Sequence record: LC494302.1
Strand: one strand, 5' to 3'
Length of the DNA stretch: 64,000 bases
Shown here: positions 1-64,000 of the stretch, piece after piece
Position numbering within the stretch: position 1 is the stretch's first letter
How the letters are laid out: each line of letters starts with the position of its first letter
Program-made: the position numbers and the translations under genes
The notes under the pieces: generated by a model
Database searches by the model: none
The model's input: only the letters and a program-made list of their open reading frames with translations
What the model was told of the DNA's origin: nothing

Positions 1-460
1 CGTGGATTACTTACAATCAAGACATTAGCTGAAGCAACTGATGAAGATATGGATGGTGATAATACCTTTACCATGTGAGGAAATATATGTCTGAAAAGCC
101 AAAAGAACCATTAGATCGTGATGATGATTTTTATGACGAACGATATGGAGATGATGATGAGTGAACATAGTGCTGTGCTTAAAAAGATTTTAAAGGAACT
201 TGATGGTGAGTTTAATGTCACAGAAGAAGAATATCAGCATTGGAAGAAAGGTTTTGAACAACTAACCGAGTATGATAAAGTGTTCAATATGATTGGCGTA
301 ATTAGCCAGTACTTACTCGGTGGAGGACGTGCAAGTGCTTCAATTCTGGCATCTGCAATCATCTGTACATCACGATGGTGTGATGAAAAAAGTTTGGAAG
401 ATTTCTAAATAAGATGCTATAATATATTATAGTACCTTAACAATATAAAAAGGATTTTAT

Positions 461-1321
461 ATGAAACCTATCCGAGTACTTTCTCTTTTTAATGGAATGA
501 GTGTGGGATATATGGCATTGCAAGATGCTGGTATCCCAGTTGAAAAATATTATTCATCCGAAATTGATAAGTACGCAATAGCTGAATCTCAATCTAACTT
601 TCCTGATATTATCCAATTGGGTGATGTAACTAAGTGGAGAGAATGGGATATTGAGTGGGACAAAATAGATTTATTAATGGGTGGTTTCCCATGCCAAGCC
701 TGGTCAGTTGCAGGTAAACAGGGTGGTTTAAATGATATACGTGGGCAGTTATTTTTAGTAATGGTTGAAATTTTTGATCATATCAAAAGTCTCAATCCTA
801 ACTTGAAATTTCTGTTTGAAAATGTTAAAATGAAGGAAGATTTCAAAGAATACATTAATAGTATTTTAGGAATCACGCCAGTACTGATAAACTCCCAGCA
901 TTATACGCCTCACTTCAGGCAGAGATATTACTGGTACAGTACTGATAAGCTTTTCATACCACCTGCATTATCCAATGCACCTAAACTTCAAGATATTATT
1001 GAAGATGGTTGGTACACTGACAGAACCGCTTCGTACTGTATAGATGCTAACTATTTTAAAGGTGGTGATTGTAACCAGTACTTTAATAAATCCAGACGAC
1101 AATTGGTGTTTCGTGACCCAGTGATCAGTCGTCAATATCTATTAGAGAATGGCAAAAGAAATATTGACTATAGACACTTAAGTGTAGTAGAATGTTGTAA
1201 ATTACAGGGTGTTCCTGAAGATTTCTTTAAAGTGTCTAGTAAGACACAAGCATACAAAATGCTTGGGAATGGATGGACTATGCCAGTTATATCACATTTA
1301 CTAAGAGAGATATTCTTTTGA
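461..1321 (+). CDS. C5 cytosine-specific DNA methyltransferase (orphan)
   Basis: Motif I LSLFNGMSVG, catalytic motif IV GGFPCQ, motif VI FENV, motif VIII RQRYYW, motif X LGNGW in canonical order. Confidence 0.92.
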   Translation: MKPIRVLSLFNGMSVGYMALQDAGIPVEKYYSSEIDKYAIAESQSNFPDIIQLGDVTKWREWDIEWDKIDLLMGGFPCQAWSVAGKQGGLNDIRGQLFLVMVEIFDHIKSLNPNLKFLFENVKMKEDFKEYINSILGITPVLINSQHYTPHFRQRYYWYSTDKLFIPPALSNAPKLQDIIEDGWYTDRTASYCIDANYFKGGDCNQYFNKSRRQLVFRDPVISRQYLLENGKRNIDYRHLSVVECCKLQGVPEDFFKVSSKTQAYKMLGNGWTMPVISHLLREIFF

Positions 1322-1807
1322 ACATAAACAAATACCAAACTTATATAAAACGTACAGAAAGTTTCAAACGGCTGGCTGTAAAATCTGAATTAGAATTTAA
1401 TTTGTATTATCCTAATATTGGTGATGAGGTATTTTATTGCTCTCATTCAAAGAATGGAACTTTACTTAAATCGGGTAAAGGAACTATTGTTGATATGACC
1501 GCAAATTTCAGAGGTAAACTTAATGTAATGTACAAAGTACAAGATTCAAGTACTGAGTGTATTCATGAAGTGATGCATAACATACCTGCATATCCAAAAG
1601 ATTTTGTTCAGCTAATATCTCGAAGGGAGAAACCTATGTTTTATTGTGGTTACGACAAATTAACCAAACAAATTATTCCTAATACTATGGGAAAATTTAA
1701 AAGTGATGTGAAATCTGAACTTGAAAAGAAATTTGGCACGTCATGGGAAACTGAAAACGAGTTTATCGAAATTCGTTTAATTGAAATTACTATACTTGAA
1801 TAATTAC

Positions 1808-1833
1808 AAATCCACGCATTGCGTGGATTTTTC
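1808..1833 (+). terminator. Rho-independent terminator
   Basis: AAATCCACGC-ATT-GCGTGGATTT perfect stem plus T-run after ORF 1273..1803. Confidence 0.75.
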
Positions 1834-1845
1834 ATAGGTGCATAT

Positions 1846-2361
1846 ATGCCAATTCCTTATGTTAAAATTATTAATAATATTCTCGATTCATGGGAAGATG
1901 TTATTACTGGTAAAAAGAAACCATCACCAGTACATGCTTTATCTGGGAAACTTCAATTCAGAATGTCAAACCAAACTGAAACATTTAATAATCATGATAT
2001 TTGCATTACATTAAAAACACCTGTTAGTATTGTAATTAAAAAAAATAAAGATGATGAATTGACATTATCTATTGGTCGTGATAAAATCATTTTAAGTAAT
2101 TTGTCTGAAGAAGAATTCTTTCAAAGAAGTACTATTATCGATATGAAAGATTTCACATATGAATCATTGGTTGAACTCAATACACGTTTTAACGATATTC
2201 AGGAACGATTGCGACCAATTCTTCGTATCGAAGAAGAAGCCTGGATTGAAAGTATTAGGAAGATGCAAGAAATGTTGAAAGAAAATATTAACAATCTGGG
2301 TAAAGCTACAATGGAATTTGGTAAAACTTTTAAACTGAACTTTTCAAAGGATCGTAAATGA
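1846..2361 (+). CDS. hypothetical protein, EExFFQxST-motif family
   Basis: ATG 1846 after AGGTG; motif SEEEFFQRSTIIDM. Confidence 0.7.
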   Translation: MPIPYVKIINNILDSWEDVITGKKKPSPVHALSGKLQFRMSNQTETFNNHDICITLKTPVSIVIKKNKDDELTLSIGRDKIILSNLSEEEFFQRSTIIDMKDFTYESLVELNTRFNDIQERLRPILRIEEEAWIESIRKMQEMLKENINNLGKATMEFGKTFKLNFSKDRK

Positions 2362-2813
2362 AAATTGATAATTTGATTCATGTTTTAGGATCTTTACATA
2401 AAATATTATCACATCTACATGAGATAAAGAAACTGGGATTTAACATCTCAAATTCAATTGAAACTACATTTAAATATCAATCAATTACTGGTGATGGTTA
2501 TTACATAATCGAATATACTTATGAAACCGATCCAGACTTCTATCCTCTTACGTTGAGAATTTATCCAACAAATCCGAGAGGAATTCACGACATATCATCA
2601 ATTTCACTTGATCCAGATGGTGAAACGAGTATTGAATACAATAATGATTCAAAACCAGAATTTTACATTGATGATATTAAAATGATGTTCAACGATGAAT
2701 ATGTTTTCCAACAAAGTACTGTGCATGATGTTGGAAGTACTAATGGACAATTTTGGAATACATGTTATTATCATATGATTGAAATTTGTAAATTATTAAA
2801 AGGCGATGATTAA
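2358..2813 (+). CDS. hypothetical protein, EExFFQxST-motif family
   Basis: ATGA-coupled ORF; motif NDEYVFQQSTVHDV. Confidence 0.7.
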   Translation: MKIDNLIHVLGSLHKILSHLHEIKKLGFNISNSIETTFKYQSITGDGYYIIEYTYETDPDFYPLTLRIYPTNPRGIHDISSISLDPDGETSIEYNNDSKPEFYIDDIKMMFNDEYVFQQSTVHDVGSTNGQFWNTCYYHMIEICKLLKGDD

Positions 2814-3192
2814 TGAAATACAGCATTGAAGTACATTACACTACAGGGGACACTGAAACTGAAGATTCAGTTACCAATACATTGGATGTTCAATGGGAAT
2901 CAAAGGATGAGGCAGTTGTAGCATTACAGTCTTTGAAAGAGCATTGGGTATTCTTTAAGAAACTCGATGATGCATATAGTAACGAACGTGCGACAATAAT
3001 CGATGAAGCCAAACATAAAGAATGGTTTGATCCAATGTCATGTGAATTCTCTTTCTTTGTAAAAATTGGAGATGAAAAAATTCCAGTACGTACACCGTGG
3101 AACGGCTACTTTGAAACTCTTCATAATGCACGAGTTGTCGCTGTTGATAATCCTGAACAAATCGATTTCGATTCATTGGACTGGAAAAAACT

Positions 3193-3636
3193 ATGACAGT
3201 ACTGCACCAATTGAAGAAGGTTAAGCATCCAGTTGTATATGAGGACTGGAAACGTCAGAAGCTGATGGGTGATTTTTATTTCCCAAAATCTAAAGTACTA
3301 GCAACGTCAAAAGCTATATACTTGAAATATAAGGATGAAGATTGTTTGTGTATTCAAATGGGATTCCATCCTAAAGTTGGTTTGTTTACAACAAATCAAA
3401 CATTTTATAAATTTAGAATTCAAAAAGATACATTTAGTATTCATATCGAAAAGCATGATGTACAAGATACAATTTATCGTGTGGAAAGTGAGCCTTTGAA
3501 TCTTGTTGAGATTCCGTACAATAATTTAGAAGAAATGTACTTTCAGCAGTTGACAATACAAGAAGACTTTGGTATGATAGGACTTCAAGAGTTAGAGATG
3601 ATTAAACAAATTCGTGATATCTACTTTAAGGAGTAA
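3193..3636 (+). CDS. hypothetical protein, EExFFQxST-motif family
   Basis: motif LEEMYFQQLTIQED. Confidence 0.7.
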   Translation: MTVLHQLKKVKHPVVYEDWKRQKLMGDFYFPKSKVLATSKAIYLKYKDEDCLCIQMGFHPKVGLFTTNQTFYKFRIQKDTFSIHIEKHDVQDTIYRVESEPLNLVEIPYNNLEEMYFQQLTIQEDFGMIGLQELEMIKQIRDIYFKE

Positions 3637-3638
3637 CT

Positions 3639-3782
3639 ATGCCAGTACGTAACAGTACTTCACGCTTTACGCTTCAACAGAAAGCAGATCTTTTGAATAT
3701 GGCAAACAAAGATTCTAATTTTCACTATCTAGTACTCGGTGGTTCAGTTGAAAAGATTGACCTACGTGAGTGTATGAAATAA
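3639..3782 (+). CDS. small hypothetical protein (47 aa, below ORF-track cutoff)
   Basis: AAGGAG RBS then ATG; MPVRNSTSRFTLQQKADLLNMANKDSNFHYLVLGGSVEKIDLRECMK. Confidence 0.55.
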   Translation: MPVRNSTSRFTLQQKADLLNMANKDSNFHYLVLGGSVEKIDLRECMK

Positions 3783-4167
3783 CAAAAGGGGCTAAAATGA
3801 GTTTACGTGAATCATGGGAACAATTTAAAGAAGAGATTGGTTATCGTGGTGTTAAGATTGAACCAATCAATCGTACTGAAAGCATCAAAGCTAGTACTAA
3901 TGGTACTACCTATGATCGTTATGATGAAAAGTATGGTTTACATTCTAAACCAAAGGATACTGAGTAATGGTGTATACTAATATTTTTACTGGTATTATGC
4001 GTAAATTTATTAATGGTACTGGATACGTATCTAATGACAACGGTAGTACATGGGTAAAAAATAATACGTCTGAATCTTTAGTAAAAAGTCTTCCGTATTA
4101 TAAAGCTTGACACATGAAAATGGAGTATGTATAATACTCCTATATTAATTAAACGAGGATATACGAA

Positions 4168-4740
4168 ATGGCTGGTGTTGATAAAATTTGTGAATTCAGT
4201 TCAGATTATGAAGGTTACGAAATGTACAAGTCCAAGCGTAATCACATCCAAGTACTGTCAAAGTACCGTAAAGAATTCAGAGGCCACAAAGCAACATTGT
4301 ATGTTTTTGAGAATGGATATTCTGAAGTTTTCACAAGTGGTGGGTACAGTACAGCTAACATGGCACATATCAACCCAAACCCAACTGAAGATGATTGGAA
4401 TAGTGGTAACGCTTTTCGTATTTCAATTTTGAATAAAATGAATCGTTACGACCGTTATTGTACATTCTTTGAAAATATTTCAGAATACAAGCAAGCATTA
4501 AAGAAATATAATCAACGCTTACTAATGAATTATGATTACATTCTTCATGTGCCAACTGTTCCAGGTCAGGTTAATGGTCTGTATACGAATAGTACACATG
4601 ATTTAACTGCGGTGAAGCGTCGCCTCAAACGTATGTTGGGTTGTCGTAATTTAACAATCAAGGTTGTGCGTAATGAATCAATGTATAACTTTTTAGATGT
4701 ACTACACTACACATTGAAGGATAATAATGGAAACGATTAA
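4168..4740 (+). CDS. hypothetical protein
   Basis: GAGGA RBS, 190 aa ORF. Confidence 0.7.
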   Translation: MAGVDKICEFSSDYEGYEMYKSKRNHIQVLSKYRKEFRGHKATLYVFENGYSEVFTSGGYSTANMAHINPNPTEDDWNSGNAFRISILNKMNRYDRYCTFFENISEYKQALKKYNQRLLMNYDYILHVPTVPGQVNGLYTNSTHDLTAVKRRLKRMLGCRNLTIKVVRNESMYNFLDVLHYTLKDNNGND

Positions 4741-7973: not shown

Positions 7974-8004
7974 AAATACCCAGTACTTGACTGGGTATTT
8001 TTTT
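7974..8004 (+). terminator. Rho-independent terminator containing AGTACT
   Basis: AAATACCCAGT-ACTTG-ACTGGGTATTT plus T-run. Confidence 0.75.
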
Positions 8005-10177: not shown

Positions 10178-10298
<121 letters not shown>

Positions 10299-11837: not shown

Positions 11838-12251
<414 letters not shown>

Positions 12252-13088: not shown

Positions 13089-13473
<385 letters not shown>

Positions 13474-13949: not shown

Positions 13950-14304
<355 letters not shown>

Positions 14305-43940: not shown

Positions 43941-43968
43941 TTGACAAACACATTCAGTACTGTATAAT
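43941..43968 (+). promoter_or_regulatory. sigma70-type promoter with CAGTACTG
   Basis: TTGACA-aacacattcagtactg-TATAAT. Confidence 0.8.
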
Positions 43969-47829: not shown

Positions 47830-47858
47830 TTGACAGTACTACCATAGTGTAGTACTAT
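47830..47858 (+). promoter_or_regulatory. sigma70-type promoter bracketed by two AGTACT
   Basis: TTGACA-gtactaccatagtgtag-TACTAT. Confidence 0.65.
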
Positions 47859-51373: not shown

Positions 51374-51777
51374 CAAATACAGTACTGGCAACTCCACCGT
51401 CTGTAATATATTGTCCAGTACTGTAAATTTGTATACCATCGGTTAAGTAAGTTCTGTATAAAGTTGCTGTAACATATACGTTATTCATATTCATCTCTAT
51501 TGGTAGTACACATTTGGTATAGGCCGACACATCTGTTTGTGTACCTATACCCAATTGACCTGCGTTATCGCCTGTGTTATTACCAGTTGCGTAAACACCC
51601 AATGAAGTTATAATATGATTAGAAAAATATGAATAACCCAAACTCTTGAGATTCTCTACTGTACAACGTACCATCTGACATAAGGGCAAAAACTGTTGTA
51701 TCAGATGAAGCTATTTTTGTTACAGAAGGTTGTATGTTCTGTTTTGATGATGTGATAATTCTTCGAAAGGGTAGCAT
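51354..51777 (-). pseudogene. internally deleted, frame-broken MLPF-family RCC1-like gene
   Basis: GGAGG-ATG gives MLPFRRIITSSKQNIQPSVTKIASSDTTVFALMSDGTLYSR, then a frame change near 51650 to a C-terminus resembling that of 58787..59974. Confidence 0.7.
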
Positions 51778-51849
51778 TGTATCCTCCAAATGTAAATCGT
51801 TATTATATTTAGGACAAAAAAATGCCAGTACAAGGCACTGGCATAAAAT

Positions 51850-53019
51850 CTAAGCAGAAGGCATATCCTTCATCTTAATAAATGAAAATTGTGTACCAGT
51901 ATTTGTGGTTTGATCAGTAAAATATGAATTACTACCAGCCCAGTACAATTCATTATTAACTATACAATATATAACAGAACTCGAACTCTGTGAATACACA
52001 CGACTTATATTTGATGGTTCTACTCCAGTACTGAACTGAACCGAACCCAACTGTGAACTTGGTATCACATCAGTTGGTCTACCTAAACCATTAACACCAG
52101 CCCCACCACCACATGTATATACCCCAGTACTATCAGTTGATATATTAACATAACCATTTCCAGCATTTTCAAATAGTATTTCACTGGGAACAACACCAAA
52201 TCCTGTAAGATCTATTTTCCTGAATGTAGTATAAACCGTAGAACCGCCAACACCTCTTCCACCATAATCATTAGAACCAGCCATATAGATACTATATCCA
52301 GAACTTCCTAAACATAATAACTGTACGTTGTCATATAATATTTGCATAGATATAACGTTATCAGGAATACTCAATACCGTAAAAGTAGTTAAAGAAGAAC
52401 TTCCAATATTACTACCAACCGATGTTCCACATCTGTAGTACTTACCGCCCTTTATATAATGGAATGATGAACCACCTAATTTATGTGCTCCTATTGCACT
52501 TACCTCAGTATCTATGAGAATGGGAGATACAACTTTGTTATTAACACCTAACTCAGATCTACTGTTCATACCGAACCCATATAAACGACCATCTAACATC
52601 AATATTAGTGTACTACCTGATGTACCCGCTGATGTAAATTCTATATTCTTTATCTGTGACACGTCAATACCTACAAATAATGAAGTTACTTCAGTCCAGT
52701 TAACATATGAACCACTAGCCCCAAAATATCCACCCATGTATAGTCCGGCACAATATAACTTATTATCAACCGTCTTTATTAATGTACCGGATACACACGC
52801 CCAAAAATCATCAACTTCATAGGGTACATGTACCCAACCACCTAATACATCACTATCATTCCCTGTTCCTAATTTGTAGTTCGATCCAGAACCACGCATA
52901 TACATATTCCCTGTACTATAAAGTAATCCGACATGTAATTGACTACCATCCAATTTCTTTATTTCGGGAAGAGTTGGTTTAATATTTCCGTACTTTAACA
53001 TTCTTCCAAAAGGTAACAT
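51850..53019 (-). CDS. MLPF-tag RCC1/BLIP-II-like repeat protein (389 aa)
   Basis: Start MLPFGRMLKYGNI after GGAGG; repeats LYGFGMNSRSELG, YMAGSNDYGGRG. Confidence 0.8.
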   Translation of the reverse strand: MLPFGRMLKYGNIKPTLPEIKKLDGSQLHVGLLYSTGNMYMRGSGSNYKLGTGNDSDVLGGWVHVPYEVDDFWACVSGTLIKTVDNKLYCAGLYMGGYFGASGSYVNWTEVTSLFVGIDVSQIKNIEFTSAGTSGSTLILMLDGRLYGFGMNSRSELGVNNKVVSPILIDTEVSAIGAHKLGGSSFHYIKGGKYYRCGTSVGSNIGSSSLTTFTVLSIPDNVISMQILYDNVQLLCLGSSGYSIYMAGSNDYGGRGVGGSTVYTTFRKIDLTGFGVVPSEILFENAGNGYVNISTDSTGVYTCGGGAGVNGLGRPTDVIPSSQLGSVQFSTGVEPSNISRVYSQSSSSVIYCIVNNELYWAGSNSYFTDQTTNTGTQFSFIKMKDMPSA

Positions 53020-53083
53020 AATTCCTCCTTTATTCATTATACTATATTTAATACAAATAAGAAAGCCAGTACAAAGTACTGGC
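53020..53083 (-). repeat. intergenic cassette (hairpin + TAAATATAGTATAA + GGAGG); copies also at 55398-55462, 56682-56747, 57906-57970, 58716-58779, 59975-60039, 61195-61259, 62406-62469
   Basis: Near-identical ~64 bp unit GCCAGTA..TACTGGC-(AT)TTCTT[AT]TTTGTATTAAATATAGTATAA..AATAA[AG]GGAGG. Confidence 0.9.
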
Positions 53084-53097
53084 ATAGTTTTATAGTA

Positions 53098-54207
53098 TTA
53101 TTTCGGCATTGTAATTGCAGACCATGAGTTCGTGGTAATAGGACCTGGTACATACAAAAAAGAACCACAAGCATAAATTTGATTATTACCATCAAATACT
53201 ATACTAAAATGTGCACATGTGTATAATGATGATTTTTCTGGGTTGTAATTATCTAAAGTTAGTGTATTGGTGAATCTACTCAAACCACCTCCCGAACCAT
53301 TTCTACCAAATTCACCAGTACTGTATATCTTTCCTTCGGTTGTTGCGTACATATTAACATATGAAGTCGCACTTGATTTTGATATTTTATGTATCTTACT
53401 ATCAATAGTAGTGGAGTTAAATGCAAATGGATATACTTGTGTGTTCGTTGTAATACCGTTACCAAGTTGACCAATATACTGCCAACCTGCGTTGTATATA
53501 TTGCTGGCTGAATAAGCAAGAGTACCAGTACTGTTACCACCAAATAGTTTAACACTTGTTAACCTGCTTACTAGTGTAGTATACTGTCCTGGACTTACGC
53601 CAAGTGAACCATACCCACTGCTCCCGCAACCGAGAAGTTCATTATTTGATGTTAATATTAATGTGTTATTCTGTGTACCCAATATATCAAGAACTGTATT
53701 AGCTCCGGTATTAATAACTGAAACAAAAGTACTCTGAGCCGTGGAATACCCACCACCGAGTGAATAGTTACCATTCATGCCTCTACCATAAACAATCGAA
53801 CCACTAGCATCAACGTAGTGCATTGTATCTGCACCAATTGATATCATTTTAATATTAGATATATGTGGAAATGAAGAAGTAACATTCAAACCACCCAACG
53901 GAATCATAGTATTTCCTGTGCCTAATTGTGTGGTAACTCCATGCATTATGAATTCTTCACCCTTGAGATAAAGAATATTGTACGCACCAGCCCATGCATC
54001 AGTAACACCTTCTGAAATTAATATCCAAGTATTTCTTGTTGCTGTATTTTCAACGTTTAACTGCAAATACGTATTAACCCCACAACCATAAAGTGAGCCA
54101 TCGCCATAGAGGACGTACAAATTATCAAGACCGCACAGTACTTTCTTTATCTTTGGAGCTTCAGGTGCAATATTTCCGTACTTAACCATTCTAGCAAAAG
54201 GTAACAT
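53098..54207 (-). CDS. MLPF-tag RCC1-like repeat protein (369 aa)
   Basis: MLPFARMVKYGNI; LYGCGVNTYLQL, YGRGMNGNYSLG, AGWQYIGQLG. Confidence 0.8.
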   Translation of the reverse strand: MLPFARMVKYGNIAPEAPKIKKVLCGLDNLYVLYGDGSLYGCGVNTYLQLNVENTATRNTWILISEGVTDAWAGAYNILYLKGEEFIMHGVTTQLGTGNTMIPLGGLNVTSSFPHISNIKMISIGADTMHYVDASGSIVYGRGMNGNYSLGGGYSTAQSTFVSVINTGANTVLDILGTQNNTLILTSNNELLGCGSSGYGSLGVSPGQYTTLVSRLTSVKLFGGNSTGTLAYSASNIYNAGWQYIGQLGNGITTNTQVYPFAFNSTTIDSKIHKISKSSATSYVNMYATTEGKIYSTGEFGRNGSGGGLSRFTNTLTLDNYNPEKSSLYTCAHFSIVFDGNNQIYACGSFLYVPGPITTNSWSAITMPK

Positions 54208-54217
54208 AAATTCCTCC

Positions 54218-55397
54218 TTAAATTTGTGGCAATTGGTATTCAGTTAAAGTCCATGTACCAACAACTGTCCCTACTGGAGACATACCAGTGTAGTATAATT
54301 TCCCATTCACATATGCAAATAATGCATTGTCATTCGCAGCAACCAACGATGTTGACGGATCATAAACTACAGAATTTGGAAATTGTGCTTGGACGAAAAT
54401 TGAAGCATTATTAGATGAATTGTTACCAAGCTGTCCATAATTATTATACCCTGTTCCAAAAATACGACTTCCATTTCTATATAATAATCCCCTAGGATTT
54501 TGTGAATATGTTTGTATAAATTCAAAATCGGAAACATTAGTTAATTGTAAATAAGTACTTTGTGGCGTTAAAGATATCTTATTAGTATTAGATAGAACAC
54601 CATTTCCTAATTGTCCGTGAATTTTGTGACCCTACACCATATAGCGGATAAGTATTATCTACATTAAGAACTATACCCAACATATTGTTATATGAAATTA
54701 TATCAACGGGGTACTGGCCTGTAGGAAAACTATACTTTGTCCAACTCGTCAAAGTATCAGTAGCAGAACCAGTTAACAATGTACCAGTACTAGTTTTACC
54801 ACATCGCCATACTGAATTATCATTTTTAATTATCCAAGTCGGACTATTGAAAAATGAACTAACCTTTTTAACATTAATATTAACCTGTGTAAATGATGTA
54901 AGTGTAGATGAACTACTACCCAACTCATAGGTCGAATTATCACCTATTGCGTAAAGAACACTATCATTTGTTAGTAAAAACATATTACGAACATTTGGAT
55001 ATATCTCCTTGATATTATCCACATTAAAACCTGAAAAATAAGACGTACAATCAACAAATGTAGTACTTTGAACTGCACTAGATGTACCAGTCCAAAGGTT
55101 CCAACCTGCATAATAAAATTTATTATCATTGGTCTGAACTAAGCTATATGAAGCATTCCTTGTGCACCAAAAATTTTTCACATTTTGCATTAAGCGAACC
55201 CATTTGGTCTGTGTCGTTGTATTTCCAAGACCGAATATACCAGCATTGTTACCGCCAATACCCCACAAATCACCGTTCTTATACAGAATCATCAATGTGT
55301 TGTTGGTAAAAGCCGATGGTGCTTGCATTTTAATTACACTAGATTCATATATAGGTGCTATATTCCCGTACTTAACCATTCTTGCAAAAGGTAACAT
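54218..55397 (-). pseudogene. MLPF-tag RCC1-like gene with single-base frameshift at about 54620
   Basis: Deleting one T in CAAAATTCACGGA restores QNHGQLGNG and an open frame to TAA at 54218 (392 aa). Confidence 0.75.
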
Positions 55398-55505
55398 AAA
55401 TCCCTCCTTTATTCATTATACTATATTTAATACAAAAAGAAATGCCAGTATCAAGTACTGGCATTATGTTAATTAATAGTGTCTTTCTAAACACATTTCG
55501 TGCCT

Positions 55506-56681
55506 TTATTCAGGTAGTACCAATTTCTTCATTGTAACTTGTTGTGTACCTGGACTCTGTTCCTGAAACATAGACCCGTTACCACACCAGTACACCTCAT
55601 TAGTCCCCACTAACGCGTATAACACACCAGAACCACCTTGTACTGAAAATGCATTAACATCTGGTGCAACATCCATATCCTCATATTGTACCTGGTGGTA
55701 ATAAGATCTTTCTGATGCAGTAGTAACAGGCCAACCAAGAGGAACACCACTACCACATGTATAAAGTTTACCATTCTGTGTCATTGCCATTATAAAATAA
55801 TTCAAACTGTGATTGTTCATCGACCCAGCATCTGGTATAATACCACTAATTTCGGGAGTAGCACTAAATGGACTCATTGTAACCTTCGTGTCTCCATACC
55901 CAATTCCTAAACAATAATCAGTGTTTATCCCAGCAGTATATACTCTAATATTACCCTTATTCGATGTAAGTACTGAAGTCGTCAAATTAGTACATGAAAT
56001 ACCAATAACTGTTCCAGATATATCAGTACTTACTGTAAATGTGGATAGTTTAGATGCACTTGTACCTAGGTTATAACTTGCGTTATTACCACATCTGTAA
56101 TATTGACCATTTTTAACATAATGTAAAGCACCACCAAAGTGTGTACCAGCAATCATAGTAACACCAGTATCAATCTTAATCGGTGTCGCTTTTGCACCAG
56201 AAACACCCAGTTCACCTCCAGTATTACTACCTATCCCGTATAAATCACCATTGCTTAACATAATTAATAAAGTACCATTTGAAGCGACAGTCTCAGTAGA
56301 AGCTATATCTTGAACTGTAGTAAGGCTTGGTATTGTAGACAATATTGATGTAATATTTGTCCATCCTGGAACAGGCGATTTGACCACACCAAGGTATCCC
56401 ATTTGTCCTGCTAAGTAAAATTCTCCTTCAGTCGTAAGTATAATGGTCCCTGCGGATAAACACCAAACATTAGCAACTTTATATGGACACTGTATCCATC
56501 CATTTTGTAAATACGCAGTACTATCATTTCCTAGCCTATATTGTGCACCATTACCACGTAGATATAAATTGCCACTATCGAACAACATACCCACATGTGT
56601 TGTAGATGTAGCAATCTTCAGTACACCCGAAGGTGCTGGTTTAACATTCCCGTACTTAACCATTCTTGCAAAAGGTAACAT
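55506..56681 (-). CDS. MLPF-tag RCC1-like repeat protein (391 aa)
   Basis: MLPFARMVKYGNV; closest in sequence to 51850..53019. Confidence 0.8.
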   Translation of the reverse strand: MLPFARMVKYGNVKPAPSGVLKIATSTTHVGMLFDSGNLYLRGNGAQYRLGNDSTAYLQNGWIQCPYKVANVWCLSAGTIILTTEGEFYLAGQMGYLGVVKSPVPGWTNITSILSTIPSLTTVQDIASTETVASNGTLLIMLSNGDLYGIGSNTGGELGVSGAKATPIKIDTGVTMIAGTHFGGALHYVKNGQYYRCGNNASYNLGTSASKLSTFTVSTDISGTVIGISCTNLTTSVLTSNKGNIRVYTAGINTDYCLGIGYGDTKVTMSPFSATPEISGIIPDAGSMNNHSLNYFIMAMTQNGKLYTCGSGVPLGWPVTTASERSYYHQVQYEDMDVAPDVNAFSVQGGSGVLYALVGTNEVYWCGNGSMFQEQSPGTQQVTMKKLVLPE

Positions 56682-56753
56682 AAATTCCTCCTTTATTCAT
56701 TATACTATATTTAATACAAAAAGAAATGCCAGTACTTGAGTACTGGCTTTATG

Positions 56754-57905
56754 TCAATAAACATCCCAAGGTAATGGTGTCTTTCTAAACCCATACCTAG
56801 TTGCGTTCTGCCCATCTCCGGCAATGTATCTACCGGTCCCACACTGATATAATTCAGTACTGCTACATATCGCACCACCAATAGTACCACTACACCACTG
56901 TGTTATATTAGAATATAATATTGGTAAATCACTACATTTGGTATATAATGCAACAGTGGCAGCCCCGCTCGGACCACCAAACACACTTCGGTTCGAACCC
57001 GTGTAATATATGCCATCTGGACTCATAAATGCAGATGTATAAGTTGTACTGCAATCCACTGGACTTCTTATATTATTAAGATCGCTTGGGTATGCTCTAG
57101 CACCATATGTGTATACATTACCAGCAGTAGTAATACCATTACCTAACTGACCATCATTTTGTCCACCACATGTAACCAACGATGCAGTACCGGAAACAAT
57201 TGCAGTAGCATTATACGAAGTACCTATAGCAATAGAAGCACCCGCCCTTTGGGATGGGGTAGGAACTGCGGCTGCGTTCCCCTGACCTAATTCACCATTG
57301 ACATTTCTTCCCCATCCATATACCGAGGTGGTATCTAATTGACATAGTACTGTACCATAACTAAACGTATATCGTATATCTTTCACAGCCGATGGTAAAC
57401 CACTAACTTTAGTTGCAACACTAATAACTCCAGAAACACCAGTAACTCCAGCGTTTGCGTTCATATTACGTCCATATGCGTATAAAGAACCATCAGCAGT
57501 TTTAATATGCATCATGCCATCTGTGCAATATAATGCATCGATGCTATCCACTACAACCGCTCCCATACTAGACGTTATATCGTTCCACCCAAGCGTTGTA
57601 GTACTAGAAATTAAGTTATTTCCGGCGTAAAGTATTCTATTATCATTTGTAACAACTACAGTATAATTGGTAGTAACGCCAATTAATCTAACATTCTCAT
57701 GTATCTTAGACCACATTCCTATTGAATTTGTGTTAGCGTCCAGAAATCCCAACTGACCAGCGGTATTATATCCAATACCCCACACATCACCTTCACTGTC
57801 CAATAACACTTCATGTGAAAAGCCAATCTTAAAATCTTTTATTGTAGGAACTACTGGAACTGGTGCAATATTCCCGTACTTAACCATTCTTCCAAAAGGT
57901 AACAT
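56754..57905 (-). CDS. MLPF-tag RCC1-like repeat protein (383 aa)
   Basis: MLPFGRMVKYGNI; VWGIGYNTAGQLG, VYGWGRNVNGELG. Confidence 0.82.
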   Translation of the reverse strand: MLPFGRMVKYGNIAPVPVVPTIKDFKIGFSHEVLLDSEGDVWGIGYNTAGQLGFLDANTNSIGMWSKIHENVRLIGVTTNYTVVVTNDNRILYAGNNLISSTTTLGWNDITSSMGAVVVDSIDALYCTDGMMHIKTADGSLYAYGRNMNANAGVTGVSGVISVATKVSGLPSAVKDIRYTFSYGTVLCQLDTTSVYGWGRNVNGELGQGNAAAVPTPSQRAGASIAIGTSYNATAIVSGTASLVTCGGQNDGQLGNGITTAGNVYTYGARAYPSDLNNIRSPVDCSTTYTSAFMSPDGIYYTGSNRSVFGGPSGAATVALYTKCSDLPILYSNITQWCSGTIGGAICSSTELYQCGTGRYIAGDGQNATRYGFRKTPLPWDVY

Positions 57906-57977
57906 AATTCCCCTCCTTATTCATTATACTATATTTAATACAAATAAGAAAGCCAGTATCAAGTACTGGCCTATATT

Positions 57978-58715
57978 TTAGACTGAATTGTTAGGATAAT
58001 ATCTCCCACGTCCCCATATTATTCGCACAGCACCACCACCAGCAGCCGTATAAGAAAAATTATCCCATATACTACCACCACCACCATACATCTTACCAGC
58101 ACCACCACTACCAGCACCACCATTATATGAACCATCGTATCTACCGCCAATACCATTAGCACCTTGAACAATGATACCAGTACCACCACCCGTACCAATG
58201 AACGAGGTATTATAGAATGCACCACCACCACCGCCGCCGCCAGCACCATTTTCACCAGTGATTGCATCTCCGTTACCACCTTTACCAGTGTAGCCACCAG
58301 CACCACCACCAATGACTGCACCACCACTTACACCAGCGTTGCCCCCATTACCACCACCATCATTAATAGCGTTAGCAGCTTTCCCACCTAGTCCACCAAC
58401 CCTATATTCACCAGTGAAGCTAACACATAGTTTTTCAGTTCCACGATATAAACCGTTTTCAACTGCTGTAGTAGTGTTGGGATGTGTAAGAGAAACACTT
58501 AAGTACTCACCACTAGTAACCGGAATATTATTACGCCACGATAAGCCGCCACCAGCACCACGTTGACCACCCGGCGAAATAACACATACTGATATTTCGG
58601 TAACGCCAGCAGGAACTGTAAATTGTGTTGTTCCTATTGTCGTGATTAATTGTTCACCATCTGGCTTATATTCAATTTTATTCCCGTACTTTACCATTCT
58701 TCCAAAAGGTAACAT
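57978..58715 (-). CDS. MLPF-tag glycine-rich protein (fibre-like, not RCC1)
   Basis: MLPFGRMVKYGNK then TTQFTVPAGVTEISVCVISPGG and long GGxGG tracts ending GAVRIIW. Confidence 0.78.
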   Translation of the reverse strand: MLPFGRMVKYGNKIEYKPDGEQLITTIGTTQFTVPAGVTEISVCVISPGGQRGAGGGLSWRNNIPVTSGEYLSVSLTHPNTTTAVENGLYRGTEKLCVSFTGEYRVGGLGGKAANAINDGGGNGGNAGVSGGAVIGGGAGGYTGKGGNGDAITGENGAGGGGGGGAFYNTSFIGTGGGTGIIVQGANGIGGRYDGSYNGGAGSGGAGKMYGGGGSIWDNFSYTAAGGGAVRIIWGRGRYYPNNSV

Positions 58716-58786
58716 ACTTCCTCCTTTATTCATTATACTATATTTAATACAAATAAGAAAGCCAGTACTCAGTACTGGCTATTATA

Positions 58787-59974
58787 TTATAATTGTCGGG
58801 GTGTATCTAGTACATATCTAGTTGTACTAGGACCACCATCATCATAAGTTCCGGTTGAATATATATTTTTCATATCAGTTAGAAATGTACGATATGAACC
58901 TCTATATATTTTTATTTTATCATACATAGAATATGTTATTTGTGTAGGCATTGGACATGCAGTAAACTTACCAACAGTTGCACTAGTACCAATACCCAAT
59001 GAACCAGCATAACTACTGGCATTTAAACCAGTTGCATATACACCAGTACTCGTAATTAGTATACTAGATTGTGGTGGGTATCCAGTATGAATTGAATACA
59101 AAGTACCGGGTGGTAACGTCGTACTGTTATTTCCTAAAACTCCATTAACAGAGCTAGATGTAGTGTTATTTCCCCATGCCCCATTATTAGCTAACCCACC
59201 GACAAGGAACTGACGTGCTCCTGTATTTGGATTTTCAACTAAAGCACTTACTGCACCAGTTGAGCATCCTGTGTATTGTAACGTTTTTGTGTATGTTGTA
59301 TTTGGTTGATATAAAGTATATTGATTATATGAAGTCCATGTAGTCGCGGAACTTATACCGGATGTAACACCACCAATATATAAATTATTTTGTTTATCAA
59401 ACAACAATACACAGTTATTTGTTGACTGTATTTGTGCAATATCAACATTAGGTGTGACCGCTTTTACAAATGAACCATCGGTTATTTCATAAGTAGTTCC
59501 CGTTCCATCGGCGAATTGTCTAGCACTGTTCCACCCTGTACTCCATATTGTATTATTGTCCATTAAGAAAGTAAACCACGTAGTACCTCCATACATCTGT
59601 TTAATTGAAGTACTTGAACTTTGTGTGTACAAATTTTGAATATATTGGTTATAACTTAAAAACGTAGTAGTACTAGTTGATAAACCAATATGACTACCAT
59701 ATCCACAGTAATAATAATTTGAGTCATTGTCTTTTACTAATAAAGTTCCTTGTGTAAGCCAGCAATCGTTAACGTTTTCTCTAATTAATGTCCATGATTT
59801 TAATGCAGTGTTGTTTCCTCTACCGAATTTCCCAAAACTATTATTCCCACGTGCATATAGTTGACCATCCGTATACAGAACCACAACATCTAAATCAGTT
59901 GGGATTATTTTCTTAATTTGAAGTGGTACTGGGGCAATATTCCCATAATTCATCATTCTTGCAAAAGGTAACAT
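58787..59974 (-). CDS. MLPF-tag RCC1-like repeat protein (395 aa)
   Basis: MLPFARMMNYGNI; LYARGNNSFGKFG. Confidence 0.8.
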   Translation of the reverse strand: MLPFARMMNYGNIAPVPLQIKKIIPTDLDVVVLYTDGQLYARGNNSFGKFGRGNNTALKSWTLIRENVNDCWLTQGTLLVKDNDSNYYYCGYGSHIGLSTSTTTFLSYNQYIQNLYTQSSSTSIKQMYGGTTWFTFLMDNNTIWSTGWNSARQFADGTGTTYEITDGSFVKAVTPNVDIAQIQSTNNCVLLFDKQNNLYIGGVTSGISSATTWTSYNQYTLYQPNTTYTKTLQYTGCSTGAVSALVENPNTGARQFLVGGLANNGAWGNNTTSSSVNGVLGNNSTTLPPGTLYSIHTGYPPQSSILITSTGVYATGLNASSYAGSLGIGTSATVGKFTACPMPTQITYSMYDKIKIYRGSYRTFLTDMKNIYSTGTYDDGGPSTTRYVLDTPRQL

Positions 59975-60045
59975 AAATTCCTCCTTTATTCATTATACTA
60001 TATTTAATACAAATAAGAAAGCCAGTATCAAGTACTGGCATTAAA

Positions 60046-61194
60046 TCATTGTATAAATGACATATCAACTTCTGTATAACTAAGAATGTTTTGTCCAGCA
60101 ATTCCCCCCATTACTACCATAGCATACCCACAATAATATAATTGCTCAGTGTCCGTAAGTATAAGTGAACCAGATGGAGTGCGTACCAAATTACACGAAC
60201 TATTAAACGAAGTATACGAAGGAGTATATGAGTACTGATTAATATTATTACCAACACCTAATTGACCAAATCCATTCGACCCAGATGCGTATAGAACTTC
60301 ATCACCTTTAGCTATATGTGATGCCATGTTACTAACACACGTATATAGAGTATAAACTCCTGAACTCAATAATGTCGGAGTTTTGTATTGTATATCGGTA
60401 GATGAAGAAGTACCACCTGTGCCAAATTCGTTCCCGTATTGTGCACCGAACTGTTTACCACAAGCGTACAAATTATTATCCGATTTAATAAAAAATGTAC
60501 TTTGATAACTTACATCAAAATCTATAACATCCGAAGCAATCATCGTCACCCCAGTAATAGAAGTTTGATTACCTGTACCTAACTGATAGTAATAGTTAAA
60601 ACCACAACCCCATAAAGTATTATCTTCTTTTAGGTATATGTTACCAACTGCCTTTTTAACCGAAGTTATAGTATCTACCCTTTTGAATGTGTTAAAAGAA
60701 TTAATGTTTGTACCATCACCAAATGATGATAGGTTCGAGTTATTGTTAACTCCACAACAATACAACGTACCATCGTTTGTTATCAAATTCACCTTCATAT
60801 CATTAAAACTACTCATGTATTTTATATCAGAAACATTAATACCACCTGATGTTATCCACGTAGTACAGTCCGTCCACAAAGTTTTTGTATCAGTTACACC
60901 AGTGAATGCCTTCGTGTTACCAGTGATAAAAACTTTTCCAGTACCTTTCTCTTCATACAATTGACAACTACTACTGTTATCTTCCAATAGAACTCGTTTA
61001 ACATTCTCCGCACAAAGAATAAATTTACTCGATGCTACACCTGTACCAGTACCCCAATTCGTCGAAGAAGATGCATACAACTTATTAGTATAAGTATCAT
61101 GAAGATACATAGAATCACTTGAATATATTTTAAAACGCCTATCCTTACCAGGGGCAATATTCCCATAATTCATCATTCTTACAAAAGGTAACAT
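60046..61194 (-). CDS. MLPF-tag RCC1-like repeat protein (382 aa)
   Basis: MLPFVRMMNYGNI; LWGCGFNYYYQLG, LYASGSNGFGQLG. Confidence 0.82.
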   Translation of the reverse strand: MLPFVRMMNYGNIAPGKDRRFKIYSSDSMYLHDTYTNKLYASSSTNWGTGTGVASSKFILCAENVKRVLLEDNSSSCQLYEEKGTGKVFITGNTKAFTGVTDTKTLWTDCTTWITSGGINVSDIKYMSSFNDMKVNLITNDGTLYCCGVNNNSNLSSFGDGTNINSFNTFKRVDTITSVKKAVGNIYLKEDNTLWGCGFNYYYQLGTGNQTSITGVTMIASDVIDFDVSYQSTFFIKSDNNLYACGKQFGAQYGNEFGTGGTSSSTDIQYKTPTLLSSGVYTLYTCVSNMASHIAKGDEVLYASGSNGFGQLGVGNNINQYSYTPSYTSFNSSCNLVRTPSGSLILTDTEQLYYCGYAMVVMGGIAGQNILSYTEVDMSFIQ

Positions 61195-61265
61195 ATTTCC
61201 CTCCTTTATTCATTATACTATATTTAATACAAATAAGAAAGCCAGTACAGTGTACTGGCATTATA

Positions 61266-62405
61266 TTATTTCCACGGTAGAAGTGAATCAGGAACCCTTG
61301 TTGGTACAGTAGTTGAAGACATTCCAGTAAGATTGGGTACACCACATGTGTATAAATTATTATATTCGTCAACTAACATCGTATAAGAATAGCTCTTACA
61401 AAAACTACTAAGATTACTACCTTCTAATGCAGTAAGATCCATTTCAGCGAATGATGTTATATACATATCAGTTGTACCAATACCACATTGACCATTTGAA
61501 TTAAGGCCACATGAAAATAACTTATTATTATTATTAATTATACAGGATGGTCCGGTAAGGTTTGTCCCAAGCTCACCCACCAACTCCACTTCTCCTTGGA
61601 ATGATAAATTTGGAATTAATGTACTCATTGGGGCTACTGACCTATTTCCTGTACCTGCTTGTCCATAGTCGTTAATAGATGCAACTTTAACATTACCATC
61701 ATTAAGAAATATATAAGAAGTTTCATTTGTATTGACTGCTTTAATTGCATTACTAATCGAAGTATCTTGTGTAAATGTGAGCAAGTTTTGTGTCGTCGTT
61801 CCTGATACAAACGTTCTACCTGCATACCAATATGAACCATCATTTAGTACTAATCCAGTACTATATATTGCACAACCAGCACTGATAACATTTTCTATTG
61901 TACTATAGGTGAATCGTGAAACGCTTGAAGTTGATCCATTCCCAAAAACACCACCAGTACCAGCACCACAGTAGAACCACTTTCCATTTTTTAAAAATAC
62001 ACGCATACACGAAGATATCACAACACTATCAATATCATCTGCACTGACACCGAAATCAGTAAAGTTCTGTGTTATATCAACCCAAACGCCGTTAGTGTTT
62101 GAAGATAGTATTGGAATAACAGTACGTCTACCAGTGTACCAAATAGTACCATCTTTCTTTATAGCAATTGTTCCTTGTACCCCACCCCAATATCGTGTAA
62201 CATTTGAGTTGACAAGAGTCCATTCAGTTGAAGAGTCCAATGAACCATTACCACTTTGTCCATATGCTGAAGAACCAAACCAATATAGATTGCCATTTGT
62301 GTGTAAATAAAATTTGGCATCAGCAGAACATTGTAACCTGTTTTTAGGTAGAATCAGTTCAGGTGCGATATTCCCGTACTTAACCATTCTTGCAAAAGGT
62401 AACAT
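61266..62405 (-). CDS. MLPF-tag RCC1-like repeat protein (379 aa)
   Basis: True start MLPFARMVKYGNI at 62405; LYWFGSSAYGQSG, LFSCGLNSNGQCG. Confidence 0.82.
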   Translation of the reverse strand: MLPFARMVKYGNIAPELILPKNRLQCSADAKFYLHTNGNLYWFGSSAYGQSGNGSLDSSTEWTLVNSNVTRYWGGVQGTIAIKKDGTIWYTGRRTVIPILSSNTNGVWVDITQNFTDFGVSADDIDSVVISSCMRVFLKNGKWFYCGAGTGGVFGNGSTSSVSRFTYSTIENVISAGCAIYSTGLVLNDGSYWYAGRTFVSGTTTQNLLTFTQDTSISNAIKAVNTNETSYIFLNDGNVKVASINDYGQAGTGNRSVAPMSTLIPNLSFQGEVELVGELGTNLTGPSCIINNNNKLFSCGLNSNGQCGIGTTDMYITSFAEMDLTALEGSNLSSFCKSYSYTMLVDEYNNLYTCGVPNLTGMSSTTVPTRVPDSLLPWK

Positions 62406-62475
62406 ATTCCCTCCTTTATTTGTTATACTATATTTAATACAAATAAGAAAGCCAGTACTCTGTACTGGCATTATG

Positions 62476-63585
62476 TTATTTTGGTAAATCAATTTTAGTA
62501 AAGACTGCAACATCCTCGATTGCACCTGGAATGGCGTAATACGATCCAGTACTATACACATCTCCATTTTTGGTTAATATCGATGTCAAACCATCACTAA
62601 AAAGAACATCCCTAATCTCACTAACTTCAACGGGTAATTGTAAATTGGTAGCACTATATATAGCACCAGTTTGAGAATTGTTTAATCCCAAACCACGGTT
62701 CGCCCCAACACCCTTCTGATATGTACTAGTAATTACCATTTGTGTAGCAGTATTTAAGGCAGGTGAATTCGTCATAAACAACGGAGAACTATTAGGCAAA
62801 GTACTTAAAGGAACTGCACGGAATGTAGTCGTACCTGAACTAAGAAAGTTTGGAGTTTGACCACATACGAAATATGATGTACCATTATAGTAATTTAATG
62901 CATTACCACCAATGGCTGCATCGATTACACCAGAACTACGCAATCCCCAAGTGTTAATTTGTGTTTGGTTCCCCGTACCATGCTGCCCACTACTATTCCA
63001 TCCAGAACTATATAGCTTATTATCTAATGTAAGATACATACTATCATTCGCATTGGTCATTACTTTACGAACGTTCGTAGCACATTGAGTTAATGTGTAA
63101 ATTGATGATGAACCAATACCCAAAGAACCACGATATCCATTATCTCCTGCACCATAGAGTACTGAATTAGTGCTAAGTACAAATATTAAACCATTTGTAC
63201 ATACAATATTAGCAATTTCACTTACTGGTATAGCATTGGTAAACCAATTAGTTCTTTCAACTAATACAGTACTGTAAGAAGTAGTTGTAGAAGATGAGAA
63301 CCAGTACGTTTGACCTGATGTCCATATCGTATTATCATTTTTAATAATAACAAGTGTACGATCACCCACGAAAAAATTAGAAACATCTGCACTTACTAAT
63401 GTCCACGAAGACACCGTGTTGGTATTACCATTTCCAGATTCACCACCTTGATTTCTACCTATGTAATATAAATCATGTGAATCAGTCAATAAGAATTGGC
63501 CTTGGGTAGAAGCACCAACTTTAATTATTTTTTTAGGACCAGGGACAATATTTCCATACATAATCATTCTTCCAAAAGGTAACAT
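62476..63585 (-). CDS. MLPF-tag RCC1-like repeat protein (369 aa)
   Basis: MLPFGRMIMYGNI at 63585; LYSSGWNSSGQHG. Confidence 0.82.
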   Translation of the reverse strand: MLPFGRMIMYGNIVPGPKKIIKVGASTQGQFLLTDSHDLYYIGRNQGGESGNGNTNTVSSWTLVSADVSNFFVGDRTLVIIKNDNTIWTSGQTYWFSSSTTTSYSTVLVERTNWFTNAIPVSEIANIVCTNGLIFVLSTNSVLYGAGDNGYRGSLGIGSSSIYTLTQCATNVRKVMTNANDSMYLTLDNKLYSSGWNSSGQHGTGNQTQINTWGLRSSGVIDAAIGGNALNYYNGTSYFVCGQTPNFLSSGTTTFRAVPLSTLPNSSPLFMTNSPALNTATQMVITSTYQKGVGANRGLGLNNSQTGAIYSATNLQLPVEVSEIRDVLFSDGLTSILTKNGDVYSTGSYYAIPGAIEDVAVFTKIDLPK

Positions 63586-63593
63586 ATTCCCTC

Positions 63594-64000
63594 CTATTGT
63601 TGCCATAACTGCGATGGCATTAATGTTAGTGTAGTAATACTATAAGTGCCATCTGGCAATCTACCACCATTTCCATTCCAGCCACCACATGCATATAATT
63701 TATAATCTTTAGTAATTATTATGGTTCTGCTCCAATCTTTAGATGCCATAAGAACATTGTCATAACCACTACTTATTGCACTAAGATTAAAAATATTCCA
63801 AGTTCTAACTAATGTATTAGTTCCATTACCTTCTTGACCATATGAGTTAGCACCACTACTTCTAACATATGGTGCGTATTGTGCCATAGGTGCACCAATT
63901 GATGCATTTCCCATATTACTTGGACAAATAAAAGTACTGTACTTACTTACATCAACCGTGACCGATGTGTTCCTAATTGGTGTTAGCTGATTTACCGATG
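63594..64000 (-). CDS. C-terminal part of another RCC1-like paralog (runs off the window)
   Basis: Frame open to the window edge; VRSSGANSYGQEG, LYACGGW. Confidence 0.7.
   Translation of the reverse strand, partial: SVNQLTPIRNTSVTVDVSKYSTFICPSNMGNASIGAPMAQYAPYVRSSGANSYGQEGNGTNTLVRTWNIFNLSAISSGYDNVLMASKDWSRTIIITKDYKLYACGGWNGNGGRLPDGTYSITTLTLMPSQLWQQ

Follow-up and report, generated by a model that had tools for sequence, protein, structure and literature searches.

The palindrome AGTACT in Rak2-like jumbo phages: a clade-wide excess and its possible role as a mark of phage DNA

The closest known parallel to the sequence element described here is HIP1 (GCGATCGC) which, together with alternate highly iterated palindromes, is found in cyanobacteria. 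HIP1 sites are conserved beyond neutral expectation (PMC5861425), and the genomes that hold them carry orphan methyltransferases (PMC4390886); three decades have passed without an agreed function, which is still debated (PMC4390886, PMC5861425). Our element is the hexamer AGTACT, which is about ten-fold over-represented in Escherichia phage SP27, a Rak2-like jumbo phage of the genus Asteriusvirus. The stretch analyzed, hereafter the window, comprises the 64,000 nucleotides of LC494302.1 bases 62001-126000 (100% identity to SP27), and it shares 96-99.5% identity with phAPEC6, PBECO4, 121Q, and further Asteriusvirus jumbo phages (~350 kb). Our literature search found no paper linking AGTACT, ScaI or RsaI to Rak2-like phages, and no report of a ScaI or RsaI digestion or of a methylome for them.

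Like HIP1, AGTACT is a short, hyper-abundant palindrome that is spread genome-wide, within and between genes, at a similar density of roughly one site per few hundred bp, and its genomes also contain orphan methyltransferases, although here the cognate enzyme is only a candidate. However, AGTACT has six bases and is AT-rich, whereas HIP1 has eight and is GC-rich; it belongs to a virus clade rather than a cellular phylum; its excess is ~10-fold rather than 15-300-fold; and the genomes that carry it avoid other palindromes to an extreme degree and contain conserved blocks free of the motif. GATC with the orphan Dam of enterobacteria offers a second parallel, namely a palindrome at ~1 per 250-400 bp, a group-wide orphan adenine methyltransferase, and copies in promoters, and it works through MutH, SeqA, and promoter switching. 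GATC shows no ~10-fold excess in E. coli (189 observed vs 182 expected in a 50-kb sample), and we found no MutH- or SeqA-like reader here. Chi, the DNA uptake sequences (DUS), and the uptake signal sequences (USS) are likewise short words whose density tells own from foreign DNA, and USS and DUS, like AGTACT, often lie in terminators as inverted pairs. These words differ in being asymmetric, used in one orientation, and served by known machines (RecBCD, the uptake apparatus), whereas AGTACT is symmetric.

Abundance, conservation, and range of AGTACT

The window contains 192 copies of AGTACT, ~3.0 per kb, where ~20 are expected. The earlier note on this DNA had estimated a ten-fold excess from a hand count of 15 copies in bases 1-4300 and a density that seemed to hold to the end of the window. 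The recount gave the same 15 copies, every 4-kb bin contains 6-19, and the excess proved stronger than stated: dinucleotide-preserving shuffles of the window yielded 20.2 +/- 4.2 copies with a maximum of 30, and none of 100 reached 192. Markov models of orders 0, 1, 2, 3, and 4 predict 21.9, 19.6, 38.0, 74.7, and 150.8 copies, respectively, the last value being high because AGTACT itself raises the counts of the pentamers AGTAC and GTACT; by order-4 z-score AGTACT ranks first among all hexamers of the window. The second most enriched 6-bp palindrome, GAATTC, is 1.8-fold in excess. The adjoining 34 kb of SP27 hold 185 further copies. As a whole-genome stand-in we used EC22.5-2 (OR845138.1; 352 kb, 34% G+C), which is 97.6% identical to SP27. 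It contains 919 copies, or ~1 per 380 bp (observed/expected ratio, O/E, 9.0), making AGTACT its single commonest hexamer. An abundance of the HIP type, with O/E values of 9-12 in coding and non-coding DNA, was seen in six genomes.

Gene coordinates within the window are those of SP27's own annotation, and gene calls for EC22.5-2 come from a simple open reading frame (ORF) heuristic made for this analysis. By codon frame (0/1/2) the window sites number 74, 36, and 49, and the other 33 lie in the 11% of bases that are non-coding. Given that this phage makes frequent use of the codons AGT, ACT, GTA, and TAC, and that the order-4 Markov expectation comes close to the observed count, one might ask whether base composition, dinucleotide bias, amino-acid content or codon usage could by themselves produce the excess. 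However, both the codon and the pentamer frequencies are inflated by AGTACT itself, and the annotated window genes hold 158 copies where a synonymous-codon shuffle with the proteins unchanged gives 37.6 +/- 5.5 and a codon-order shuffle within genes gives 24.9 +/- 4.8. Furthermore, in EC22.5-2 the word is used in 753 of 1,674 (45%) permissive amino-acid contexts (Ser-Thr, [K/Q/E]-Tyr-[F/L/S/Y/C/W], and x-Val-Leu), where codon usage predicts ~175; it is denser still in non-coding DNA; and the control phage PA5oct, at 32% G+C, has a single copy in 25 kb. The two codon shuffles and the codon-opportunity count rule out a codon or amino-acid effect, and with the Markov and codon-shuffled nulls proposed in the earlier note now run, we give an artefact of any of these kinds practically no credence.

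Site conservation was measured in alignments of SP27 with TH47 and with A4 (~84% nucleotide identity), with expectations taken from frame-matched hexamers. AGTACT was intact at 82 of 116 sites in TH47 (0.71; 52.7 expected, z ~5.5) and at 48 of 65 in A4 (0.74; 27.9 expected, z ~5.0), whereas control words (same-composition hexamers, other A2T2GC palindromes, and one-mismatch neighbors) were intact at 0.38-0.49. As with HIP1, conservation lies well above that of matched control words, indicating that AGTACT sites are maintained by selection.

Outside the window, two blocks of 5 and 8 kb in EC22.5-2 (50892-55891 and 58324-66610) are free of AGTACT. They consist of tandem arrays of small paralogous genes and are confined to Asteriusvirus-type phages. 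Together they offer 57 usable contexts, none of which is filled (chance ~1e-15 at the genome-wide 45%), while the 2.4 kb between them is normal (11 of 22 contexts filled). The same two blocks are empty at the homologous place in A4 (locus L023, 632-5127 and 6948-14247), where the encoded proteins are 24-90% identical and one block boundary falls inside a paralogue array. Gene by gene, this range of identity overlaps the 37-97% of the flanks, which excludes faster evolution of the blocks. In phage fEgEco12, whose genome ends have been experimentally determined (PMC13070987), the first free block begins where the 20,993-bp left terminal repeat has its inner edge: AGTACT occurs for the last time at 20,857 and is missing from 20,858 up to 24,000. 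The terminal repeat itself has the highest AGTACT density of the genome, 5.6-6.9 per kb.

Some other neutral process (biased mismatch repair, gene conversion or a template-directed mutational bias) might create AGTACT without function. Gains and losses are indeed balanced, with 34 SP27-only and 27 TH47-only sites and diverse partner sequences, and one-mismatch neighbors are mildly enriched (1.1-1.9-fold), as they would be around a constantly gained and lost word. However, the rest of the genome gains roughly 0.8 AGTACT per kb over ~16% divergence, so that a uniformly acting process would have filled the blocks, which are still empty despite the protein divergence between SP27-type phages and A4. 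Taken with the conservation of existing sites far beyond matched controls, this makes a neutral origin unlikely.

To place the excess among phages, we sampled 25-41 kb around the sigma70-like gene of each relative. A search of IMG/VR with the sigma factor returned phage 121Q only, hence the relatives were taken from GenBank records; their sigma proteins are merely 31-74% identical to that of SP27. O/E for AGTACT was 9.7 in A4, 12.6 in Klebsiella RaK2, 11.1 in Salmonella 7t3, 10.5 in Cronobacter GAP32, and 10.9 in Xanthomonas XbC2, with densities of 2.6-3.3 per kb across these Rak2-like relatives and 944 copies observed vs 86 expected in the pooled clade sample. The same excess in unrelated AT-rich phages would have spoken against a special system. 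Neither the Vibrio jumbo phage 2.275.O (7 vs 6.8 expected, O/E 1.0) nor the AT-rich jumbo phage PA5oct (1 vs 7.8 expected, O/E 0.1) showed it. The excess is specific to the clade, occurs in all sampled genera whatever their host, and is not general in AT-rich phages. In a 50-kb sample of E. coli K-12 we counted 0.22 AGTACT per kb, ~12-fold below the density in the phage, which suggests that the word could serve as a mark of phage DNA.

The earlier note had remarked that the excess is contrary to the usual depletion of palindromes in lytic phages, and this contrast holds within these very genomes. Restriction-site avoidance, known from virulent phages, is extreme in them, and AGTACT runs counter to it. 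Of the six-base palindromes with G and C, about 20 are absent or nearly so clade-wide, in phages of very different hosts, with observed/expected counts of 0/31 for CTGCAG, 0/34 for GCATGC, 0/36 for TGGCCA, 0/28 for GTCGAC, 2/40 for CCATGG, and 2/27 for GGATCC. Palindrome avoidance in the clade is much stronger than usual. GCGC is the sole 4-bp palindrome to be so completely avoided: it is missing from the window (~29 expected), from EC22.5-2, and from seven pooled phage regions (0 vs ~195 expected), while its counts are normal in Vibrio 2.275.O and PA5oct and reach ~7 per kb in E. coli. One possibility is that its absence reflects a phage-encoded GCGC-specific nuclease directed against host DNA.

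Among words of the form NGTACN, AGTACT alone is high, and GGTACC and CGTACG are absent. Its flanks show a weak symmetric preference, for C at -1 (43%) and G at +6 (47%), which points to a dimeric reader acting at the DNA level. The word is thereby weakly extended to CAGTACTG, the commonest octamer (84 of 377 SP27 sites; 204 copies vs 4.5 expected in EC22.5-2). A wider hidden motif was rejected: the flank logos give these two positions only and longer perfect palindromes are rare, with four sites extended by at least 4 bp. Long perfect palindromes centered on AGTACT include ATTCAGTACTGAAT (13996-14009) and TATTCAGTACTGAATA (14115-14130), in a non-coding stretch. AGTACT is also the center of the SlmA-binding site of E. 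coli, the 12-bp palindrome GTGAGTACTCAC. The SlmA-type flank GAGTACTC is the rarest of the 16 flank combinations (1 of 377 sites) and the trait occurs in a Xanthomonas phage; therefore the AGTACT copies are not SlmA sites.

The C5 methyltransferase and the proposed Vsr-like ratchet

The gene at 461..1321 (+) encodes a C5 cytosine methyltransferase (Pfam PF00145, E 7.5e-38). The 161-amino-acid ORF that follows at 1318..1803 (+) overlaps its stop by 4 nucleotides, an arrangement like that of dcm and vsr. The earlier note offered, as one option, a ratchet in which the methyltransferase modifies AGTACT and excessive repair by a Vsr-like T:G endonuclease turns AGTATT into AGTACT, comparable to Dcm/Vsr acting on CCWGG in E. 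coli. In favor of this model are the genuine C5 methyltransferase and the overlapping downstream ORF, and a similar model was proposed by Elhai for HIP1 (PMC4390886).

Its predictions were not borne out. AGTATT/AATACT, which should be depleted, has an O/E of 1.30, and at lineage-specific differences between SP27 and TH47 the partner word was AATACT in just 2 of 34 and 2 of 27 cases, so that no C-to-T signature is seen. No match to Vsr (PF03852) was found in the Pfam scan of the 120 window proteins, and tblastn of E. coli Vsr against the whole EC22.5-2 genome gave a best E of 1.2. The overlapping ORF lacks the HGCFWH motif, matches E. coli Vsr by BLASTP at E 0.045 over 56 amino acids, belongs to no Pfam or NCBIfam family, and has only 4 close homologues; its AlphaFold2 model (mean pLDDT 52) was uninformative. 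A MutS_IV match of the ORF at 1846-2361 (E 0.002) was below the Pfam cut-off and treated as noise.

The methyltransferase itself also argues against the model. Its best solved relatives are the catalytic domains of DNMT3A/B/C (E ~3e-23, full length), and it is nearer to these animal enzymes than to the bacterial M.HaeIII or M.HhaI. DNMT3 catalytic domains act on CpG, and to judge from this relationship the phage enzyme probably does so too. RaK2 DNA has been reported to be CpG-methylated on the basis of bisulfite sequencing, data not shown (PMC3622015). CpG O/E is 0.74 in the Asteriusvirus genome, 0.75 in RaK2, 0.99 in GAP32, and 1.00 in XbC2, whereas the AGTACT excess is the same in all four; TpG O/E is 1.22-1.23 in the CpG-depleted Asteriusvirus and RaK2. 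AGTACT contains no CpG. CpG depletion is thus confined to two genera, and close homologues of the enzyme were found in Asteriusvirus-type phages only, whereas the AGTACT excess is found throughout the clade. This indirect test suggests that the C5 methyltransferase is dissociated from the excess. The parallel with Dcm/Vsr hence fails on neighbor depletion, substitution spectrum, presence of Vsr, methyltransferase target, and phyletic match, and the conserved AGTACT-free blocks speak against any genome-wide repair drive. We consider the ratchet extremely improbable.

Promoters, terminators, and tRNA genes

Copies of AGTACT had been claimed in coding DNA, promoters, terminators, and a tRNA, and all these contexts were confirmed. 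A sigma70-like promoter at 11839..11866 (+) reads TTGACT-N9-AGTACT-G-TATAAT, with the word at 11854-11859 in the spacer and abutting the -10 hexamer; its architecture is repeated at 29273-29300. The promoter at 43941..43968 (+), a 12/12 consensus match (TTGACA, 16 nucleotides, TATAAT), has AGTACT at 43956-43961 in its spacer. Two copies lie in a promoter-like site at 47830..47858 (+) that was recognized by reading the sequence and by a consensus scan: one shares the last A of the -35 hexamer (TTGAC-AGTACT, 47835), and the last T of the other is that of the -10 hexamer (47851). The composite TTGACAGTACT also occurs in RaK2, GAP32, XbC2, and A4. Two placements recur, one in the spacer against the -10 hexamer (TTGACA-N9-AGTACT-G-TATAAT), and one directly upstream of the -35 hexamer or sharing one base with it (AGTACTTGCAA, TTGACAGTACT). 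Promoters with two copies account for the sole structure in AGTACT spacing, pairs at 20-24 bp. A resemblance to LexA sites was set aside, as the LexA spacing does not fit the promoters read here.

Terminators likewise contain the word. A terminator-like hairpin at 7974..8004 (+) is formed by AAATACCCAGT/ACTGGGTATTT and followed by a T run, with AGTACT (7982-7987) at the top of the left arm and in the loop. On the minus strand, between 50675 and 60039, hairpins whose stems are built on GCCAGTACT...AGTACTGGC lie 3' of tandem RCC1-repeat genes (50675-50698, 53065-53083, 55441-55465, 56728-56747, 57950-57972, 58760-58780, and 60021-60039). The window has 22 terminator-like sites, compared to 7.4 +/- 3.0 in shuffles, and AGTACT is in the stem of 12 of these 22 rows, which correspond to the seven hairpins, several being counted on both strands. 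The minus strand of 51850-64000 encodes at least 10 tandem paralogous RCC1-repeat proteins, whose annotation as 'DNA condensation protein' derives solely from the name of the domain. After each gene comes a near-identical intergenic segment, in which the ribosome-binding region is always the same and is accompanied by an A/T-rich tract and a CCAGTACTGG-type hairpin.

In tRNA-Gly(TCC), at 10200..10272 (+), AGTACT occupies 10227-10232 in the anticodon arm, immediately 5' of the anticodon. A tRNA-Ser at 13128-13219 has the anticodon ACT by ARAGORN, an exact match to the AGT codon, whereas the homologous tRNA of A4 and RaK2 carries GCT. SP27, A4, and RaK2 have a tRNA set in common, namely Ser(AGY), Ser(UCN), Thr(UGU), Asn, Met, and Gly. 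Of the Ser codons in the phage 34% are AGT, and of its Thr codons 46% are ACT, and its tRNAs may be supplied for codons inflated by AGTACT. A preference for GCT and GGT codons may simply explain a second word: the E. coli Chi octamer GCTGGTGG is present in 28 copies in EC22.5-2 (16 and 12 by strand; ~2.4 expected), more enriched than any other octamer without GTAC, and TGGTGG, CTGGTG, and TGCTGG are likewise enriched in the window.

These placements raise the question of whether AGTACT is merely a promoter or terminator element of the phage transcription programme. In EC22.5-2, ~100 of the 159 non-coding sites stand in two fixed registers to -10-like hexamers, the word lies within many terminator stems, and its density peaks in the early small-gene region. 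However, 83% of all sites are intragenic (~17% non-coding), and these are even along genes, in all frames, in all gene-length classes, and on both strands; moreover, coding sites are as strongly conserved as non-coding ones. A role as a sigma70 promoter element is insufficient as the sole explanation, given that the fixed register covers only ~100 sites, and we judge it very unlikely that the word is nothing else.

A signal at the RNA level has also been considered, in which AGUACU would be a ribonuclease cleavage or binding site that times mRNA decay. Long AGTACT-free operons could then be stable messages, and sites are found in genes of both strands. Yet the flanks extend the palindrome symmetrically, as expected of duplex DNA and not of single-stranded RNA, some copies are found in a tRNA or precede -35 hexamers, and an RNA signal has no need of a palindrome. 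We therefore think an RNA-level role improbable.

AGTACT as a proposed mark of phage DNA and its candidate readers

The earlier note had argued that an active system lies behind the excess, and this remains the best reading of a word that is clade-wide, selected (71-74% of sites intact vs 38-49%), and beyond composition and codon nulls. We propose, with a probability of about one half, that AGTACT is a selected, DNA-level mark of phage DNA that is read by a conserved, two-fold-symmetric phage protein. According to this proposal, AGTACT would be a cis-acting word of duplex DNA, maintained at ~2.6-3.3 copies per kb by natural selection. It is built into synonymous codons and occupies every free non-coding position, such as promoter spacers and terminator stems. 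As a mark it would form a sequence-encoded counterpart to the base modification of T4-type phages. On copies wedged against -35 or -10 hexamers, the reader could modulate sigma70-type early promoters, and AGTACT-free operons would escape this action.

Several observations weigh against the proposal. The suggestion that a phage protein reads AGTACT as a self-mark stands as the best reading, but no such protein was found: the Pfam scan of the 120 window proteins gave no DNA-binding domain, and its only matches were the methyltransferase, DenV, the sigma factor, and one AAA/STAND ATPase. AGTACT spacing in the window is near random (coefficient of variation of the gaps 0.86, longest gap 1,615 bp); these values fit a random process and rule out the regular spacing of a coverage-type function. 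The tolerated gaps of 5 and 8 kb fit poorly with a mark that covers the genome, and the relatives were sampled over 25-41 kb each only. The fixed promoter register could represent 'cheap embedding', through the shared A of TTGACA or T of TATAAT, rather than regulation. Finally, the characterized members of the family to which our most concrete candidate belongs are known to act on GATC.

This candidate reader is a Dam-family N6-adenine methyltransferase of 173 amino acids (PF05869, E 6e-32) that is encoded outside the window, at 91151-91672 in EC22.5-2 and 192297-192815 in the SP27 record. It is 88-100% identical within Asteriusvirus-type phages and 63-70% identical in Klebsiella, Salmonella, and Erwinia relatives and in coliphage EJP2, far better conserved than the sigma factor (35-43% across the same genera). 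The matches listed include Asteriusvirus, Alcyoneusvirus, the 7t3/Munch group, Hallingskeid, and EJP2; GAP32 and XbC2 are not among them. In most records the gene adjoins one for a cytidylyl- or nucleotidyl-transferase. With 63-100% identity and a conserved neighborhood, the enzyme resembles the orphan methyltransferase of a Dam/GATC-type system. In EC22.5-2 the ORF overlapping it downstream has CapR/DUF723 domains, and among the ORFs around it Pfam detected no further methyltransferase, although one is mentioned in the Sharanji paper. The DNA of fEgEco12 is cut normally by ten common enzymes, several of them sensitive to adenine or CpG methylation (PMC13070987), which makes a bulky or non-specific modification unlikely. 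From its conservation, this methyltransferase is the best concrete candidate, and it is possible, if doubtful, that it reads AGTACT as an epigenetic mark in the manner of GATC/Dam or HIP1/DmtA. A non-enzymatic DNA-binding protein is about as likely a reader, and we hold that idea just as tentatively. One further NTPase of the early region is the 256-amino-acid protein with the AAA/STAND-type Pfam match, probably the ORF at 47050-47820, which has weak Orc1/Cdc6 and Hda-like NCBIfam matches.

The main competing explanation is that AGTACT is the substrate site of a phage DNA-processing enzyme, for example a site that is nicked for replication or clamp loading, a place where primase starts (both strands read GTA), or a bidirectional Chi-like signal for recombination or nuclease attenuation. 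A palindrome serves both strands, a spacing of ~1 per 380 bp suits lagging-strand or recombination functions, and T4-like replication and recombination genes are present in these phages according to the genome papers cited for them. In addition, a recent preprint ties HIP1 to recombination and transformation efficiency (bioRxiv 10.1101/2024.09.10.611283). On the other hand, we identified no enzyme of this kind, and the AGTACT-free blocks would have to manage without the function. A symmetric word carries no information on strand, and since AGTACT is its own reverse complement an orientation cannot be defined; primase and Chi sites are not known to be six-base palindromes. We regard this explanation as a possibility, though not a probable one.

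The proposal that AGTACT marks phage DNA can be widened, more speculatively, to two marks, a positive one in AGTACT (~900 copies per genome) and a negative one in the absence of GCGC, both read by phage enzymes. As part of the same speculation, these marks may be used to distinguish phage from host DNA in transcription, in repair and recombination, and in host-DNA destruction. Identity may then be encoded by the sequence and not by modified bases or a protein shell, and the conserved AGTACT-free operons that begin where the terminal repeat has its inner edge may be programmed exceptions.

Should AGTACT prove to be a functional mark, viruses would have their first described highly iterated palindrome. 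HIP1 would gain a tractable model, with a small lytic genome, a laboratory E. coli host, and commercially available ScaI, and the word could reveal how a large, unmodified phage genome is discriminated from host DNA without a phage nucleus or base substitution. For phages of this group that are candidates for therapy, ~900 ScaI-type sites per genome would make hosts with ScaI-type restriction a predictable barrier unless the sites are protected.

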